Shown: positions 8,232-14,928, numbered from the stretch's first letter. The stretch: 64,000 nucleotides of DNA from Phaeosaccion multiseriatum (GCA_965112735.1 OZ218955.1:1984001-2048000); one strand, 5' to 3'. Translations and numbers: made by a program. Notes: generated by a model not told the origin, from the sequence alone.

Positions 8232-9409
8232 ATGTCGTGCTACATCATTGAGCGCTCGCCCGATGCTGTGAGGGCTGCTGCCGATGCGAAGCTCCAAATC
8301 TTGCTCCCTCTAGAGTTTAAGATGACCAATGGGCTGAGAGTCCAGATTTTCAGGCTCGACAGAAGCAACAAGGAAGAGCTCGACATTCTCCACCATCTCT
8401 TGAACGAAGAGGTGAGGGTGGGAGGGGAGGTGAAGGGGGAAGGGTGTGCGTGTGTTGATCCAGACATCTTGACATTTCCTGCTCGTTGTAGATCAGGGCA
8501 GGAACGTATCCGCAAGACCGGGAGCTGGACATTCAGGGCTTTCTGGCATACTACTGTAGCGAGAGTGTCTTCGTTGCACGAGCCTTGGTACCGGACGAGA
8601 CCGAAGCAGCAGCAGGAACGACCTTTGAGCTGTGCGGCTCTTTCTATGTCAAAAAGAACTTCCCCGGCAGATGCGATCACATTTGCAACGGAGGATTTCT
8701 CGTTCGAAAGGGTTGGCGGGGCAAGGTGAGCGAGCACGTGAGCATGATTTCTGTGTATCTGATCCTCTTTAGAACCTTCAGCAGCCCTCACCCGCCCTCC
8801 CTTCTTCCCTCCCTCCCCCTCGTTGCTGCTGCTCACTACCGACATGGCCGAGGGAGCAGGGGGTTGGCAAGGCTCTGGGCTCTGCCTTCCAGCAGGTGGC
8901 CCCCGCCCTGGGCTTTCGGGCCTCTTTCTTCAACCTCGTGTTTGTGGACAACCCCGCGTCCATCGCCCTCTGGGATGGGCTGGGCTTTCGTAGGGTAGGG
9001 CGGTGCGTTGAGTGTTGAGAGAGAGAGAAAGGGAGGAAGGAGGAGGGGAGAGAGAGAGAGAGAGAGAGAGGGAGGGGAGAAGGAGGGGCTTACAGCAGTC
9101 ACAGCAGGGGGCTTGCCTATCGCCTGTGATTTGTCCCATGACGATTGTTTTGCTGTGTACCGAACCCAACCCGTGGGTCTTCCTCGTCCCCTCCTGCCTC
9201 CCCGCGTCACTTAAGCGAGCGCCTTTCTACGCCCTCCTACTTTTTCCTCATGTGATGTCCTCCTTCTGCGGCTGCTGCTTCCTGCCAGGGTCCCCGAGGC
9301 GAAGATTATCGAAGATGGGACCGGTGTTGACGCTCTCATGTACTACATGTGCTTTGATGTTGGTACCGAGAAGGAGGACAAGGACAAAGAACAGGTGGAA
9401 AGTGTGTGA
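8232..9409 (+). CDS. GNAT N-acetyltransferase, Mpr1 (azetidine-2-carboxylate acetyltransferase)/Spt10-like
   Basis: Exons 8232-8411, 8492-8725, 8860-9002, 9289-9409: LNEEIRAGTYPQ..GSFYVKKNFPGRCDHICNGGFLV..WRGKGVGKALG..FFNLVFVDNPASIALWDGLGFRRVGRVPEA, characteristic of this subfamily. Confidence 0.88.
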
Positions 9410-10715: not shown

Positions 10716-11336
10716 TCTCTATCTGTCTCTCTCTCTCGCTCTTCCTTGGTCATCATCCATCAGCTGCCATCTCCTACACACAGCACGATAGGTAGGACGG
10801 CCCGCACACCGCACTCGGCCGAGTGCGGAAACCTCTCGGCCCATCACCACACTTGCCCTCGGCCCTGGCCCAGTCTTCCATCTTCTGCCTCTGCCTTCCG
10901 TGCCATGCTTCCGCTGAGTATGACTCCGGCCACCTGCTGCCTTGCGACGGCCCTTGGGTTGCAGACACTCTTTGAGGTCCGTTTCCGTTCGTCGCCGTTC
11001 CACGCGAATGGACACAAGTGGGCAAGTCGACAAGTCTGTCTGTCTTCATGTCTGCCTCGCGCATGAGCAGTGTCAGTGTTCCCCGTCCTCGCCCCTGGCA
11101 GCCAAGCTTCTCCTCTTCGCTCCCTTCTCTCGCGCCCCACCCCCAGGCCCATTCCCAATGGACGCCCCTCTCCCTCCAAGCATAGACAACCAACCAACCA
11201 ACCAACCAACCAACCTACCAACCAACCACCATCCTCGCAGAGCATAGGTAGAGGCAGAGGGTGCCTCTGTCCTTCCATCGAAGGAACTCAAGCCAACCCA
11301 GCCAGAGGTCAACCAACCAACCTCCCACCATCCTCG

Positions 11337-14300
11337 TCATCTCCGCCCACGACCGCCCCCCTTCTCCTTGACAGGCTTCTCTGTCTCCATGTCATCCTCG
11401 TCTCCGTCAGCCCCTCCGAGGGTGTCTGCCTTGTGGATGGCCAGCACGTAGCGGGCCACAAGGCGGCGCTGTGGGGTGCGGCCGTTCTCGTCGTCGTCGT
11501 CTGCAAACTTCACCAGCAGCTGTTGTGTGCGTGTGCGTGTGTGTGTGAGAGAGAGAGTGTGTGTGTGTGTGTGATGCAACAGAACAGGACAGGAAAGGGC
11601 GGACAAGACATGAATTTTGTCGAGAGTTAGGATTGAGTGAGGAACGTAACAGAGTCAACAGAGCTCAGATTGGGCTCGGCCTGACCCTCTACCGATGGCT
11701 TGCCAAGCATCTCCGCTCCTCCTCTTCTCCCCTCCCGAGGTAAAAGCTACGCAGCACCGTCTAGTCTCAGAGGGCGAGAAGGAGGGTGAGCAGCACTACT
11801 CTACACCTCCTAATGCTGTCCTCACCCCCACGCACACGCACGTACGCACGCACCTCTAGCTCTGGCCTCTTCTTGTCGGTGTTGGCGATGGCCTCCTTCT
11901 TGGGCATCTTGAAGACCTTTCCCCTGTAGAAGGAAGTGGTGTCGGGAAACACCGCCAGCACTTCGTCCCCCTTAGCGATGCCCTCCACGCTGTCCTCCAG
12001 CCGAAGGATGCCCTGATTGATTGATTGGTTCGTTGATTGATTGATTCCACATAGCACAGCAATTGGCGACGCAGCACATCACAAACACACGAGTGAGGAC
12101 ACGTGCATGAAGGAGGAAGTCAAAACCGCGCAACGCTCCCCCAGGCAAAGGAGTGCAAAGCTCAAGTCTTTCCGCTGATCGCACCCATCCTCCTCCTCCT
12201 CCTCCTCCTCCTCCTCCTCCTCCTCCTCCTCCTCCTCCTCCTCCTCCTCCTCCTCCTCCTCCTCTTTGAAAAGCCTCTCTCGATCTCTACCTGTCTTCCT
12301 CCTTGTCAAGTCCCCTGTCTCTCCCCCCCCCCCCCAAACCTTCCCTCCCCGCCTATCTCCCTGAATGTCTCTCTCGGTGAATGCCTCTATGCATGTATGC
12401 CTTGTCTCTATCCTCACCTCCGCTGGCACTCGTATGACTCTATCATGGTCGTCTTCGTCCTTGACGTCGTACTGGTCTATGTCTGCGTGGTAGCGAGTGG
12501 CACGAGCCAAAATCCACTCATTGTCGTCCAGAGCAGCCACCTGGGGAGAGAGAGAGGAGAGAGAGAGAGAGAAAGACAGAGAGTGTGTGTGAGAGGGAGA
12601 GAGGAGGGGGAGAGAAAGAGACAAGGAGGGGGAGAGAAAGAACCAAGGAGAGAGGGGGGGGGGGGAGAGAGGAAGAGCGAGAGAGGAGAGAGATGTAGAG
12701 CCATCGGGCAGGAAACTAAAGCTTGACACTAAACCAAACCCAACCCACCCAACTCAACCCAACCCCCCCCCCCTTCCCCCACCCCCCCCCCCAAACGGAA
12801 CCCACTCGGGAGCCCCTCCCTCCTCCTCCCTCCTCCCTCCTACCTGTTCTCCGCTCCTGGCCCGGCCCATCTTTGGGTTGACGATGGGAGTCCCCGCAAC
12901 CGCTCCCACCCCGCTGTCCCTCTTTCCGCTGACAGCCCCGTGTCCGTTGCCGCTTCCGTTTGAGTGGCCATTGCCGGATCCCTTCCCATTGGCGTGACCG
13001 TTGGCATGCCCCCCCGGCCCTCCTCCGGCGCCATTACTGCTGCTTCCGTTGTTATGTTTCCTCTTCTTTCCAGCCCCTCCCCCACCAGAGCCGTTGGCTT
13101 ATAATAGTCATTGGGAGAGAGAGAGAGAGAGAGGCAGGAAGGGGAAGAGAGAGAGCGAGAGCGAGAGAGGGGGTTACACGAAAGCGAGCAACAAACACGG
13201 GGGATAAGGATACAGTACACTTTCACAGCCTTGCACCACTTGCGAACAAACATCGACTATACAATCGCCCGAGCACCGCACCACTGTGGCATAGCATAGC
13301 GCAAATCGCGCCCTCTCTCTCTCTTTGAGGCGGGCTTAGGACTGGGGTTCGAATCCAAGCGGAACCAGGACACATACCCACCCACTCCACTCAAGCCTCC
13401 TCCCCTTCTCCCCTCTCTCTCACCTTGGGAGCCGGCCTTGCCCGACGTCTTCTTCCCGTCGTCTCCCGCAGCCTTCCTGCCGGTCTTCTTGCCGCCGCTC
13501 CCTCGCTCTGCTCCTTGCTGCTGCTGGTGGTGGTGCTGTTGCATGACTTGTTGGTGATGGTACGCGCTGTGGTGCTGTTGCTGCTCGGGGTGATAGAAGC
13601 CATTGCCCCCTCCTCCATACATGCCGCCACCGCCACCGCCACCGCCACCGCCATACATTTGGTGCTGATGGTAAGCATCTGTGGAGTAGAGTGGAGTGGT
13701 GTGGAAGTGTTGGGGTGAGTGGGTGAGTGCGTGCGTGAGTGAGTGAGTGAGATGAGATGAGATTCGGATTAGAGCCATACACAAGCAAAAACTGAAGCAA
13801 AGTAAGCAGCCAAAGGCCCCTGTCACTATGCTTGACAGCTTTGTTTGAGCCACACCACACAACACACAAGGGCGAGAGAGAGAGAAGGAGAGCATGATGG
13901 CTCGCCGAACAGGGCAGGCGTCTCCGTCGATGGAAAACGCGGAAATTTGTCAACACAGGTCCAGTGAATGAAACGAAGGGCCGTGCAGCCTTGCTGTTCC
14001 CTTGCTGTTGATTGACTGGCATGTGGGTGTGGCGCACTCACCGAGACTGATCATGGGCTGGAAGGGCTTGCCCGGCACGTGGCACTTTCTAATGAAATCC
14101 CCCAGCACGCCCTCCTCATTGACCGGCCTGGCCTCAAAGTGCCTTGCCACAGCCACTGCCAGCTCCGCCTAGAGTGTAAGAAATAAGGGAGAGAGGGAGG
14201 GGGGGTGAATGAGTGAGAGGGAGTGCGCGGGGAGGGAGCATGAGAGGAGGGGGGGGGCGAGTGGGGGACGGAGAAAGAGTAAAGGTACCGAGGCAGGGAA

Positions 14301-14928
14301 GGAAGTAGAGAGCAGGAAGGAATCGTGCAGGTTAGAGGACAAACAGAATGACATGCTATGCGTGCGAGAGAGAACACACCATCCCTGCCTCCCCCCCCCC
14401 CTTCCAGTCCCTCCACCCCTGCCCCCACACCGTTCGTTCGAAATTCATTCCTTCTGTTTCTGTGGACAAACCTGCGTGCTATCGGGCCTGACGTTAATGT
14501 TGTAGTGCTCCACGTAGCTTTGTAGGGAACGATACTGTGAAGAAAAATAGGAGGTGGAAGAAAAAGAAGAGGGAGAAGAGGAGAAGGAGGAGGGGGATGA
14601 GCAAGGTGGGGAGGACCTCTCAGGACCCTCCCAACCGCTTTCCTCCCACACTCGAAACCAGGCCAGGACATTTAAAGAAAACAAGCGGTGTTGAGTGTAT
14701 ACGAACAACGGTCGACTCCAAAGACCCGGACGATGAAGCGTGTAGGGAAGGGCACTCGTTAGAGTGGAAGGCCGAGGAGGAAATACGTACGGCCTTCACA
14801 CACGGCCTTCGTACCTCGAGCTTCCGGAAGTCCACTTGCATGCTGCGTGGGTACTTTTCGTAGCGGTGGAAAGGAAGATAGGTCCCCTTCTTCCCTGCAG
14901 CGCCGGAGCCGCCCCCCTTGCCGCTCAT
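11337..14928 (-). CDS. Chromatin protein: N-terminal SAP30 Sin3-binding domain fused to C-terminal SGF29-type tandem Tudor domain
   Basis: Eight phase-consistent exons: 14928-14815, 14534-14472, 14168-14042, 13678-13424, 13097-12844, 12540-12418, 12012-11854, 11519-11337. N-terminus: VDFRKLEYRSLQSYVEHYNINVRPDSTQAELAVAVARHFEARPVNEEGVLGDFI. C-terminus: GEQVAALDDNEWILA..YDVKDED..GDEVLAVFPDTTSFYRGKV..VKFADDDDENGRTPQRRLVARYV. Confidence 0.85.

Follow-up and report, generated by a model that had tools for sequence, protein, structure and literature searches.

Within a 64,000-nt stretch of the Phaeosaccion multiseriatum genome (GCA_965112735.1 OZ218955.1:1984001-2048000; the whole of it is called the window here), a gene on the minus strand at 11337-14928 is predicted to encode a protein that begins with a SAP30-type Sin3-interaction region (SID) and ends with an SGF29-type tandem Tudor. 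Our best reading, which we hold with moderate confidence, is that this protein would be a subunit of a Sin3L/Rpd3L-type histone deacetylase (HDAC) complex that brings its own predicted reader of histone H3 di- or trimethylated at lysine 4 (H3K4me2/3). Judging from the sequences compared here, the architecture is a lineage-wide, unstudied ochrophyte variant of two well-known modules and not a one-off, and our literature search found no paper on a SAP30-SGF29 fusion, nor on SGF29 or SAP30 in stramenopiles.

Gene model and domain content

We rebuilt the gene model by hand from the reverse complement of the window, and the eight exons in one open reading frame (ORF) that an initial annotation of this DNA had proposed were recovered. 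All seven introns run from GT to AG with compatible phases, and the exons add up to 1278 nt, or 425 codons plus a stop (minus strand, 14928-11337). The start ATG at 14928 is the first ATG past an upstream in-frame stop, and the stop codon is a TGA at 11339-11337. The predicted protein has its SID in the N-terminal ~90 residues, followed by a linker of ~170 residues and by a tandem Tudor in the C-terminal ~150. The locus appears to be a single protein-coding gene of ~425 aa, and it is from the splice model that we infer a single polypeptide.

The Pfam scan took the eight exon translations singly, and all searches were likewise on single exons. Two consecutive exons matched the SAP30_Sin3_bdg family (PF13867; curated cut-off, 22.2 bits), exon 2 at positions 4-22 (E = 0.0046, 17.7 bits) and exon 3 at positions 24-52 (E = 5e-7, 30.3 bits), the latter passing the cut-off alone. 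The SGF29_Tudor family (PF07039; curated cut-off, 23.8 bits) was matched by exon 6 at positions 16-44 (E = 1.7e-4, 22.1 bits) and by exon 7 at positions 73-103 (E = 1.4e-8, 35.3 bits), which passes that cut-off. Given that consecutive exons continue one profile, these matches do not look like the product of chance.

A hidden Markov model built from 33 full-length relatives (the family profile) was also tiled in order, by exons 1 (positions 8-33), 2 (35-54), 3 (56-84), 6 (137-171), 7 (174-215), and 8 (223-264), with scores of 34 bits for exon 3, 40.7 for exon 6, 61.6 for exon 7, and 43.6 for exon 8. Exons 1, 2, and 3 abut in the N-terminal family alignment with neither gap nor overlap. When five relatives were compared with the whole window by tblastn, only these exons matched, collinearly and on the minus strand, and exons 4 and 5 showed no significant homology to Pfam families, to the relatives, or to the family profile. 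Matches of single exons to PDB sequences were weak (exon 7, E = 0.37; exon 6, E = 0.58; both to SGF29 chains and too short for significance), and exons 3 and 8 had no relevant match there. A look-alike search of the Atlas with exon 7 returned SGF29 Tudor fragment clusters only.

A SAP30-type Sin3-interaction region

The first three exons encode the SID, whose motifs in the window are VDFRKLE and ELAVAVARHF..PVNEEGVLGDFI. Exon 1 (14815..14928, minus strand; 38 codons) contributes the start codon along with a lead rich in Gly and Lys and a conserved YLPFHRYEKYPR..VDFRKLE stretch leading into the Sin3-interaction region. The first SID helix (SLQSYVEHYNINVRPDSTQ) lies in exon 2 (14472..14534, minus strand; 21 codons), and helices two and three (ELAVAVARHFEARPVNEEGVLGDFIRKCH) lie in exon 3 (14042..14168, minus strand; 42 codons plus 1 nt, ending in phase 1). 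The initial annotation had placed a SAP30 Sin3-interaction region here, to be given up if the N terminus had no SAP30_Sin3_bdg similarity; the similarity is there in exons 2 and 3, with exon 3 above the cut-off.

In animals and yeast, the three-helix motif of the SID acts as a clamp on Sin3, at its PAH3 domain. Sap30 in yeast Rpd3L grips Sin3 PAH3 by at least three helices (PMC10224958), and in mammals the binding of SAP30 to PAH3 is constitutive (~10 nM) and ~1:1 with Sin3A PAH3 (PMC6295471). Residue roles here and below were taken from these two papers together with PMC4589357 and PMC10889360. The family profile matched the SAP30 SID bound to Sin3A PAH3 (2LD7) with an E value of 4e-8; for yeast Sap30 in structures of Rpd3L, including 8GA8_J, the E values were 7e-5 to 4e-4. 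Within the SID, conservation is highest in a block with an H-F pair and ELAVAVARHF, and this block aligns to SAP30 as bound to PAH3.

Structural models were made for the ortholog from Tribonema. In the AlphaFold 2 model of this ortholog, the predicted local distance difference test score (pLDDT) is 81-96 over residues 31-100, which hold the SID helices (block means). In fold searches with the whole model the Tudor part outweighed the rest, so the SID was also folded and searched alone; it formed three helices with a pLDDT of ~90, and its three best PDB matches were the SAP30 SIDs 2LD7, 9A07, and 8HPO_I, all of them weak (E = 8e-3 to 0.17, template modeling [TM] score of ~0.5).

The window protein has the Sin3-interaction region (PF13867) in common with SAP30 and yeast Sap30 but differs from them in its surroundings. 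Its SID stands at the extreme N terminus, whereas that of SAP30 is at the C terminus, and it is preceded by a family-specific YLPFHR.EKYPR lead-in. The SAP30 zinc finger (zf-SAP30, PF13866) is absent, with no Pfam match in any exon at E values up to 10 and no Cys in exon 1, and the protein carries a predicted histone reader.

An SGF29-type tandem Tudor

The C-terminal SGF29 double Tudor reported by the initial annotation was found again in exons 6 and 7, together with its motifs EWILA, VLAVFPDTTSFY, and KFADDDD. Exon 6 (12418..12540, minus strand; 41 codons) encodes Tudor 1 with EWILA and an acidic YDVKDEDD; exon 7 (11854..12012, minus strand; 53 codons) covers the inter-Tudor strand plus the first half of Tudor 2 and includes the F and Y of a methyl-lysine cage in VLAVFPDTTSFYRG; and exon 8 (11337..11519, minus strand; 60 codons plus TGA) encodes the remaining half of Tudor 2 (LLVKFADDDDENGRTPQRRLVARYVL, including the cage F and D) and then an acidic/basic tail. 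The family profile matched the human SGF29 tandem Tudor (3LX7/3ME9) with an E value of 2e-26.

The cage of human SGF29 consists of Y238, Y245, F264, and D266 (PMC4589357). All four positions are kept in the window protein, where they read F/Y/F/D. Exon 7 was aligned directly to the human SGF29 segment LVLALYPQTTCFYRA, and the cage F and Y in VLAVFPDTTSFY come from this direct alignment, opposite human LVLALYPQTTCFY; the cage F and D in VKFADD were placed transitively via the family alignment. The first cage residue is Phe in the window protein and Tyr in human SGF29, a change that the human protein tolerates, since H3K4me2/3 binding by its Y238F mutant is thermodynamically indistinguishable from that of the wild type (PMC4589357).

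Tudor 1 of SGF29 provides a negatively charged pocket for the N terminus of H3 (H3A1) (PMC4589357). The YDVKDEDD of exon 6 (family consensus, ydVqDEDD) aligns with human YEVDDIDEE, the acidic stretch of Tudor 1. Some of these residues may line the H3A1 pocket. Conservation of all four positions of the cage and of the acidic motif in Tudor 1 extends across the family, which is consistent with a capacity to bind H3K4me2/3. In the model of the Tribonema ortholog, pLDDT values are 84-96 over most of residues 211-280 and 301-330 and low in the linker, and the best matches of its Tudor part were SGF29-H3K4me structures (Foldseek E = 4e-8; VIA Z = 13.7 with 3ME9 and 12.5 with yeast Sgf29) at ~26-28% identity to the human SGF29 Tudor.

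Canonical SGF29 is anchored in the histone acetyltransferase (HAT) module of SAGA/ATAC by its N-terminal helical region. The window protein has the tandem Tudor, the cage, and the acidic motif in common with SGF29 (PF07039; 3ME9, 3MP1), but the N-terminal helical region is replaced by a SAP30 SID and a disordered linker, which leave no room for it; the initial annotation had likewise seen no SGF29 N-terminal coiled coil. The ortholog model contains one low-confidence helix before the Tudors (residues 156-179, pLDDT of ~55). Because the N-terminal anchor region is replaced, the window protein does not count as an SGF29 ortholog where that term implies a subunit of SAGA.

The linker between the two domains is made of Gly, Gln, His, and Asn, with basic clusters that resemble nuclear localization signals and might direct the protein to the nucleus. 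Exon 4 (13424..13678, minus strand; 255 nt, phase 1 to 1) encodes a low-complexity Gly/Gln/His/Tyr stretch with a Lys-rich tail, and exon 5 (12844..13097, minus strand; 254 nt, phase 1 to 0) encodes a Gly/Asn/His/Ser stretch; the KKRK cluster that the initial annotation had described in a Gly/Gln/His linker is located here. The final codons of exon 5, GRARSGEQ, form the beginning of Tudor 1.

The architecture recurs in ochrophyte algae

The initial annotation had suspected that similar proteins exist in other stramenopile proteomes, and they do. A phmmer search of 1.84 billion representatives with exon 7 gave 54 matches, 51 of which were domain-scanned: every one of the 51 contained SGF29_Tudor, 13 also contained SAP30_Sin3_bdg, 4 a Forkhead-like domain, and 1 an ING N terminus. 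A word-based search with one relative, P0045, extended this set, and here the domain pair was counted from precomputed Pfam annotation; 34 of 56 relatives carried both PF13867 and PF07039, several of them being MMETSP "type:complete" ORFs. When further relatives that seemed to have the Tudor only were rescanned, 4 out of 10 passed the SAP30 cut-off. Given that the 34 relatives of P0045 with both domains include transcript-derived complete ORFs, the fusion is, on this comparison, not an annotation accident.

The complete ORF P0045 was derived from a Trinity transcript of Tribonema gayanum, and 4 residues separate it from the T. minus genome model KAG5176280.1. Residues 20-42, 44-62, 65-96, 205-237, 242-284, and 301-328 of P0045 were matched by exons 1, 2, 3, 6, 7, and 8, respectively. 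Exon 1 was matched in tblastn by P0045, P0074, and P0008, the last of which originates in the MMETSP1173 transcriptome of Rhizochromulina marina. The family extends over the classes Xanthophyceae, Chrysoparadoxophyceae, Eustigmatophyceae, Pelagophyceae, Dictyochophyceae, and Phaeophyceae, with members in Tribonema, Chrysoparadoxa, Nannochloropsis oceanica, Chrysophaeum, Octactis, Rhizochromulina, and Ectocarpus. Database members include T. minus KAG5176280.1, N. oceanica NocV09_02101270, Rhizochromulina MMETSP1173, and Octactis speculum.

Throughout the family, the order is a SID, a linker with a basic cluster ("akrkrrrsk" in the profile), and a tandem Tudor, and the window gene fits this order. 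It shares architecture, order, and motifs with its ochrophyte relatives, as well as two intron positions with T. minus, and reaches 57-66% identity to its closest relatives in the best-conserved exon. Its linker is among the longest in the family, at ~170 aa versus ~40-100 in relatives.

Some members have an additional module. P0038, P0074, P0091, and P0007 combine a SAP30 SID and an SGF29 Tudor with a Forkhead-like winged helix that scores near or below its Pfam cut-off, and Chrysoparadoxa CAM9861885.1 and Chrysophaeum CTAYLR_000015 are members with an added winged helix. The window has no winged-helix exon that could be found by tblastn of four winged-helix tails against its whole length (best E = 0.47), and the gene is therefore the two-module form, as opposed to the paralogs with three modules in Chrysoparadoxa, Chrysophaeum, and Ectocarpus. 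The Ectocarpus models themselves (CAB1120773.1 and others) have the Tudor and the winged helix without a SID; because they begin in a Gly-rich stretch, the annotation may have missed their 5' exons.

Two further kinds of exon 7 match stood apart. In P0052, a metagenome protein of 199 aa, an SGF29 tandem Tudor takes the place of the PHD finger behind an ING N-terminal domain. The giant proteins P0001 (3924 aa) and P0005 (2489 aa) each contain ~18 tandem SGF29-like Tudor-2 segments.

Automated annotation has already placed the domain pair in public databases, where the usual name is "SGF29/SAGA-associated factor 29"; the automatic name of one JGI record is "SGF29 tudor-like domain/Sin3 binding region of ... 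SAP30." The usual name probably points to the wrong complex.

Alternative explanations

The gene model could have joined two neighbors by mistake, a SAP30-like gene made of exons 1 to 3 and ending in intron 3 and a short SGF29-Tudor gene starting from exon 4 or 5. Exons 4 and 5 are of low complexity and without homology support, and in-frame Met codons occur in exon 4 and near the end of exon 5. Read-through into intron 3 meets a stop ~26 codons on (ORF 13950-14156), which makes a product of ~128 aa conceivable, and some relatives have Tudor-only database models, such as the 150-aa Chrysoparadoxa CAM9223391.1. Skipping of exon 4, with exon 3 joined directly to exon 5, also stays in frame. However, dozens of relatives have both domains in the same order in one protein, including transcript-derived complete ORFs; the phases of exons 3, 4, 5, and 6 fit exactly at canonical splice sites; and the 5' end of Tudor 1 is encoded in exon 5. 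At the junction of exons 5 and 6, ARSGEQ is followed by VAAL, which matches the family consensus ARPGEQVAAKV and human SGF29 ARPGDKVAARV, and exon 5 should therefore be part of the Tudor-bearing transcript. The T. minus locus, too, has 8 exons with linker exons between the two domains, and two of the seven introns (after RKLE and before LLVKF) are shared with it at identical position and phase, while a third lies within one codon. We regard a misjoining as highly improbable. It is also very improbable that the window copy has fallen silent or is decaying as a paralog: its linker is unusually long and repeat-rich and its introns are filled with microsatellites, but the frame is open and the splice sites are canonical throughout all 8 exons, and the family-invariant residues in the checked exons are all present (H-F, WILA, DEDD, FPDTTSFY, F.DD, and P.R). 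Several observations nonetheless weigh against reading the locus as a single gene for a Sin3-complex reader. Both structure models (whole protein and SID alone) are of the Tribonema ortholog, and the best fold match of the SID is weak in absolute terms (E = 8e-3, TM score of 0.52, ortholog). The support for the joins of exons 3, 4, and 5 is that of frame and splice signals, in low-complexity sequence. Among public runs, four contain this DNA; they derive from one sample, none is recorded as RNA, and their contigs span the introns. The joints in these run contigs are few and repeat-driven, and none coincides with a splice site.

Other alternatives accept the fusion and question what it does. 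The initial annotation had raised the idea of a bridge between HAT and HDAC complexes, in which the role of SGF29 in SAGA/ATAC and that of SAP30 in Sin3-HDAC would be physically linked, and the parent domains do both come from subunits of those complexes. This idea found no support, since the SGF29 part that anchors it in SAGA/ATAC is missing: a SID and a Gly/Gln/His/Asn linker are found where canonical SGF29 has its N-terminal helical anchor, and the ortholog model offers just the single low-confidence helix before the Tudors. The Tudor pair itself is a histone reader and not a complex anchor (PMC4589357). We consider a bridge extremely improbable. Alternatively, the fusion may be real while one of its modules serves another partner, with the Tudor pair reading a different mark or a non-histone methyl-lysine, or the SID binding something other than PAH3; such a protein might, for instance, compete with SAGA and shield H3K4me from it instead of recruiting a deacetylase. 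The low identity of the Tudor to human SGF29 and the weak fold matches of the SID would allow for this, and paralogs with extra modules (a winged helix; an ING N terminus) suggest functional diversification. Yet the family as a whole retains all four positions of the cage along with the acidic motif of Tudor 1, and both the H-F pair and ELAVAVARHF can be aligned with PAH3-bound SAP30; we think a change of partner unlikely, although worth taking seriously. The remaining proposal of the initial annotation, a lineage-specific recruitment of Sin3-HDAC to H3K4me, fits the cage, the acidic-pocket residues, and the 2LD7 match, and it stands as a prediction, with the binding of both partners still hypothetical.

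Repeats and neighboring ORFs

The introns and 3' flank of the gene are full of microsatellites (12179-12272, 11519-11603, 12540-12680, 11160-11240, and 13700-13760). Intron 6 holds a (CCT)n array of ~30 units, a (GT/CA)n array abuts the acceptor of exon 8, a (GA)n array adjoins the acceptor of exon 6, CCAA-type repeats lie past the stop codon, and GAGT-type repeats lie in intron 3. Contigs from the DNA runs end at microsatellites, and bins 11200-11330 and 13689-13819 have a depth hundreds-fold above the rest, which indicates that these motifs are repeated across the genome. A poly-C/G tract in intron 6 at 12322 varies in length among runs of one sample (C or CC insertion, single contigs), reflecting either length polymorphism or homopolymer error. 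The nearest sizeable downstream ORFs, at 8232-8845 of the window, encode 165 aa on the plus strand and, overlapping it, 201 aa on the minus strand; neither matches any Pfam family.

Discussion

We propose that the window protein would take the place of SAP30 within a Sin3L/Rpd3L-like deacetylase complex. Its flexible linker would allow the Tudor pair to capture H3 tails that carry K4me2/3, and the deacetylase might thus be held at, or guided to, the nucleosomes of active promoters, where acetylation would be trimmed or reset.

The initial annotation had pointed out that the two parent complexes have opposing activities. This paradox dissolves, because the logic of a tethered reader is already known in ING2/Pho23: Sin3L/Rpd3L has flexibly tethered PHD fingers that read H3K4me3, in Pho23 and Cti6, and ING1b/2 is the mammalian counterpart of Pho23 (PMC10224958). 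ING1b/ING2 and Pho23 are the closest functional analogue of the window protein, each combining a scaffold-bound segment with a long flexible tether and a reader of H3K4 methylation (PMC10224958). There is no sequence relationship between them, however; the reader of the window protein is a tandem Tudor where theirs is a PHD finger, and its anchor is a SAP30-type SID where theirs is the ING coiled coil. By this analogy, only the reader module and its carrier would be new here.

Since P0052 is among the closest relatives of the Tudor, the same reader is found on two types of protein that have counterparts among Sin3L/Rpd3L subunits. P0052 therefore fits a picture in which the SGF29-type Tudor would serve subunits of deacetylase complexes in this lineage. 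We also put forward, tentatively, the possibility that ochrophytes rewired the reading of H3K4 methylation by their Sin3/Rpd3L complexes by copying the Tudor onto SAP30, onto SAP30 with a winged helix, and onto ING, where it replaced the PHD finger. Under this rewiring, doubtful as it is, there would be a lineage-specific set of paralogous reader-adaptors, in which the window gene would be the simple form with two modules and might be the sole SAP30 of these algae.

Chromatin regulation in ochrophytes, among them brown algae, diatom relatives, and eustigmatophytes, has been little studied. The architecture described here is already visible in databases, its function can be predicted from its parts, and it offers concrete targets in species that can be transformed, Nannochloropsis and Ectocarpus for example. 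If our reading is true, the link between H3K4 methylation and deacetylation would be built in these organisms from a different reader module than in animals and fungi, and on the core subunit SAP30. The family would then offer a natural experiment in the swapping of reader modules between opposing chromatin complexes.

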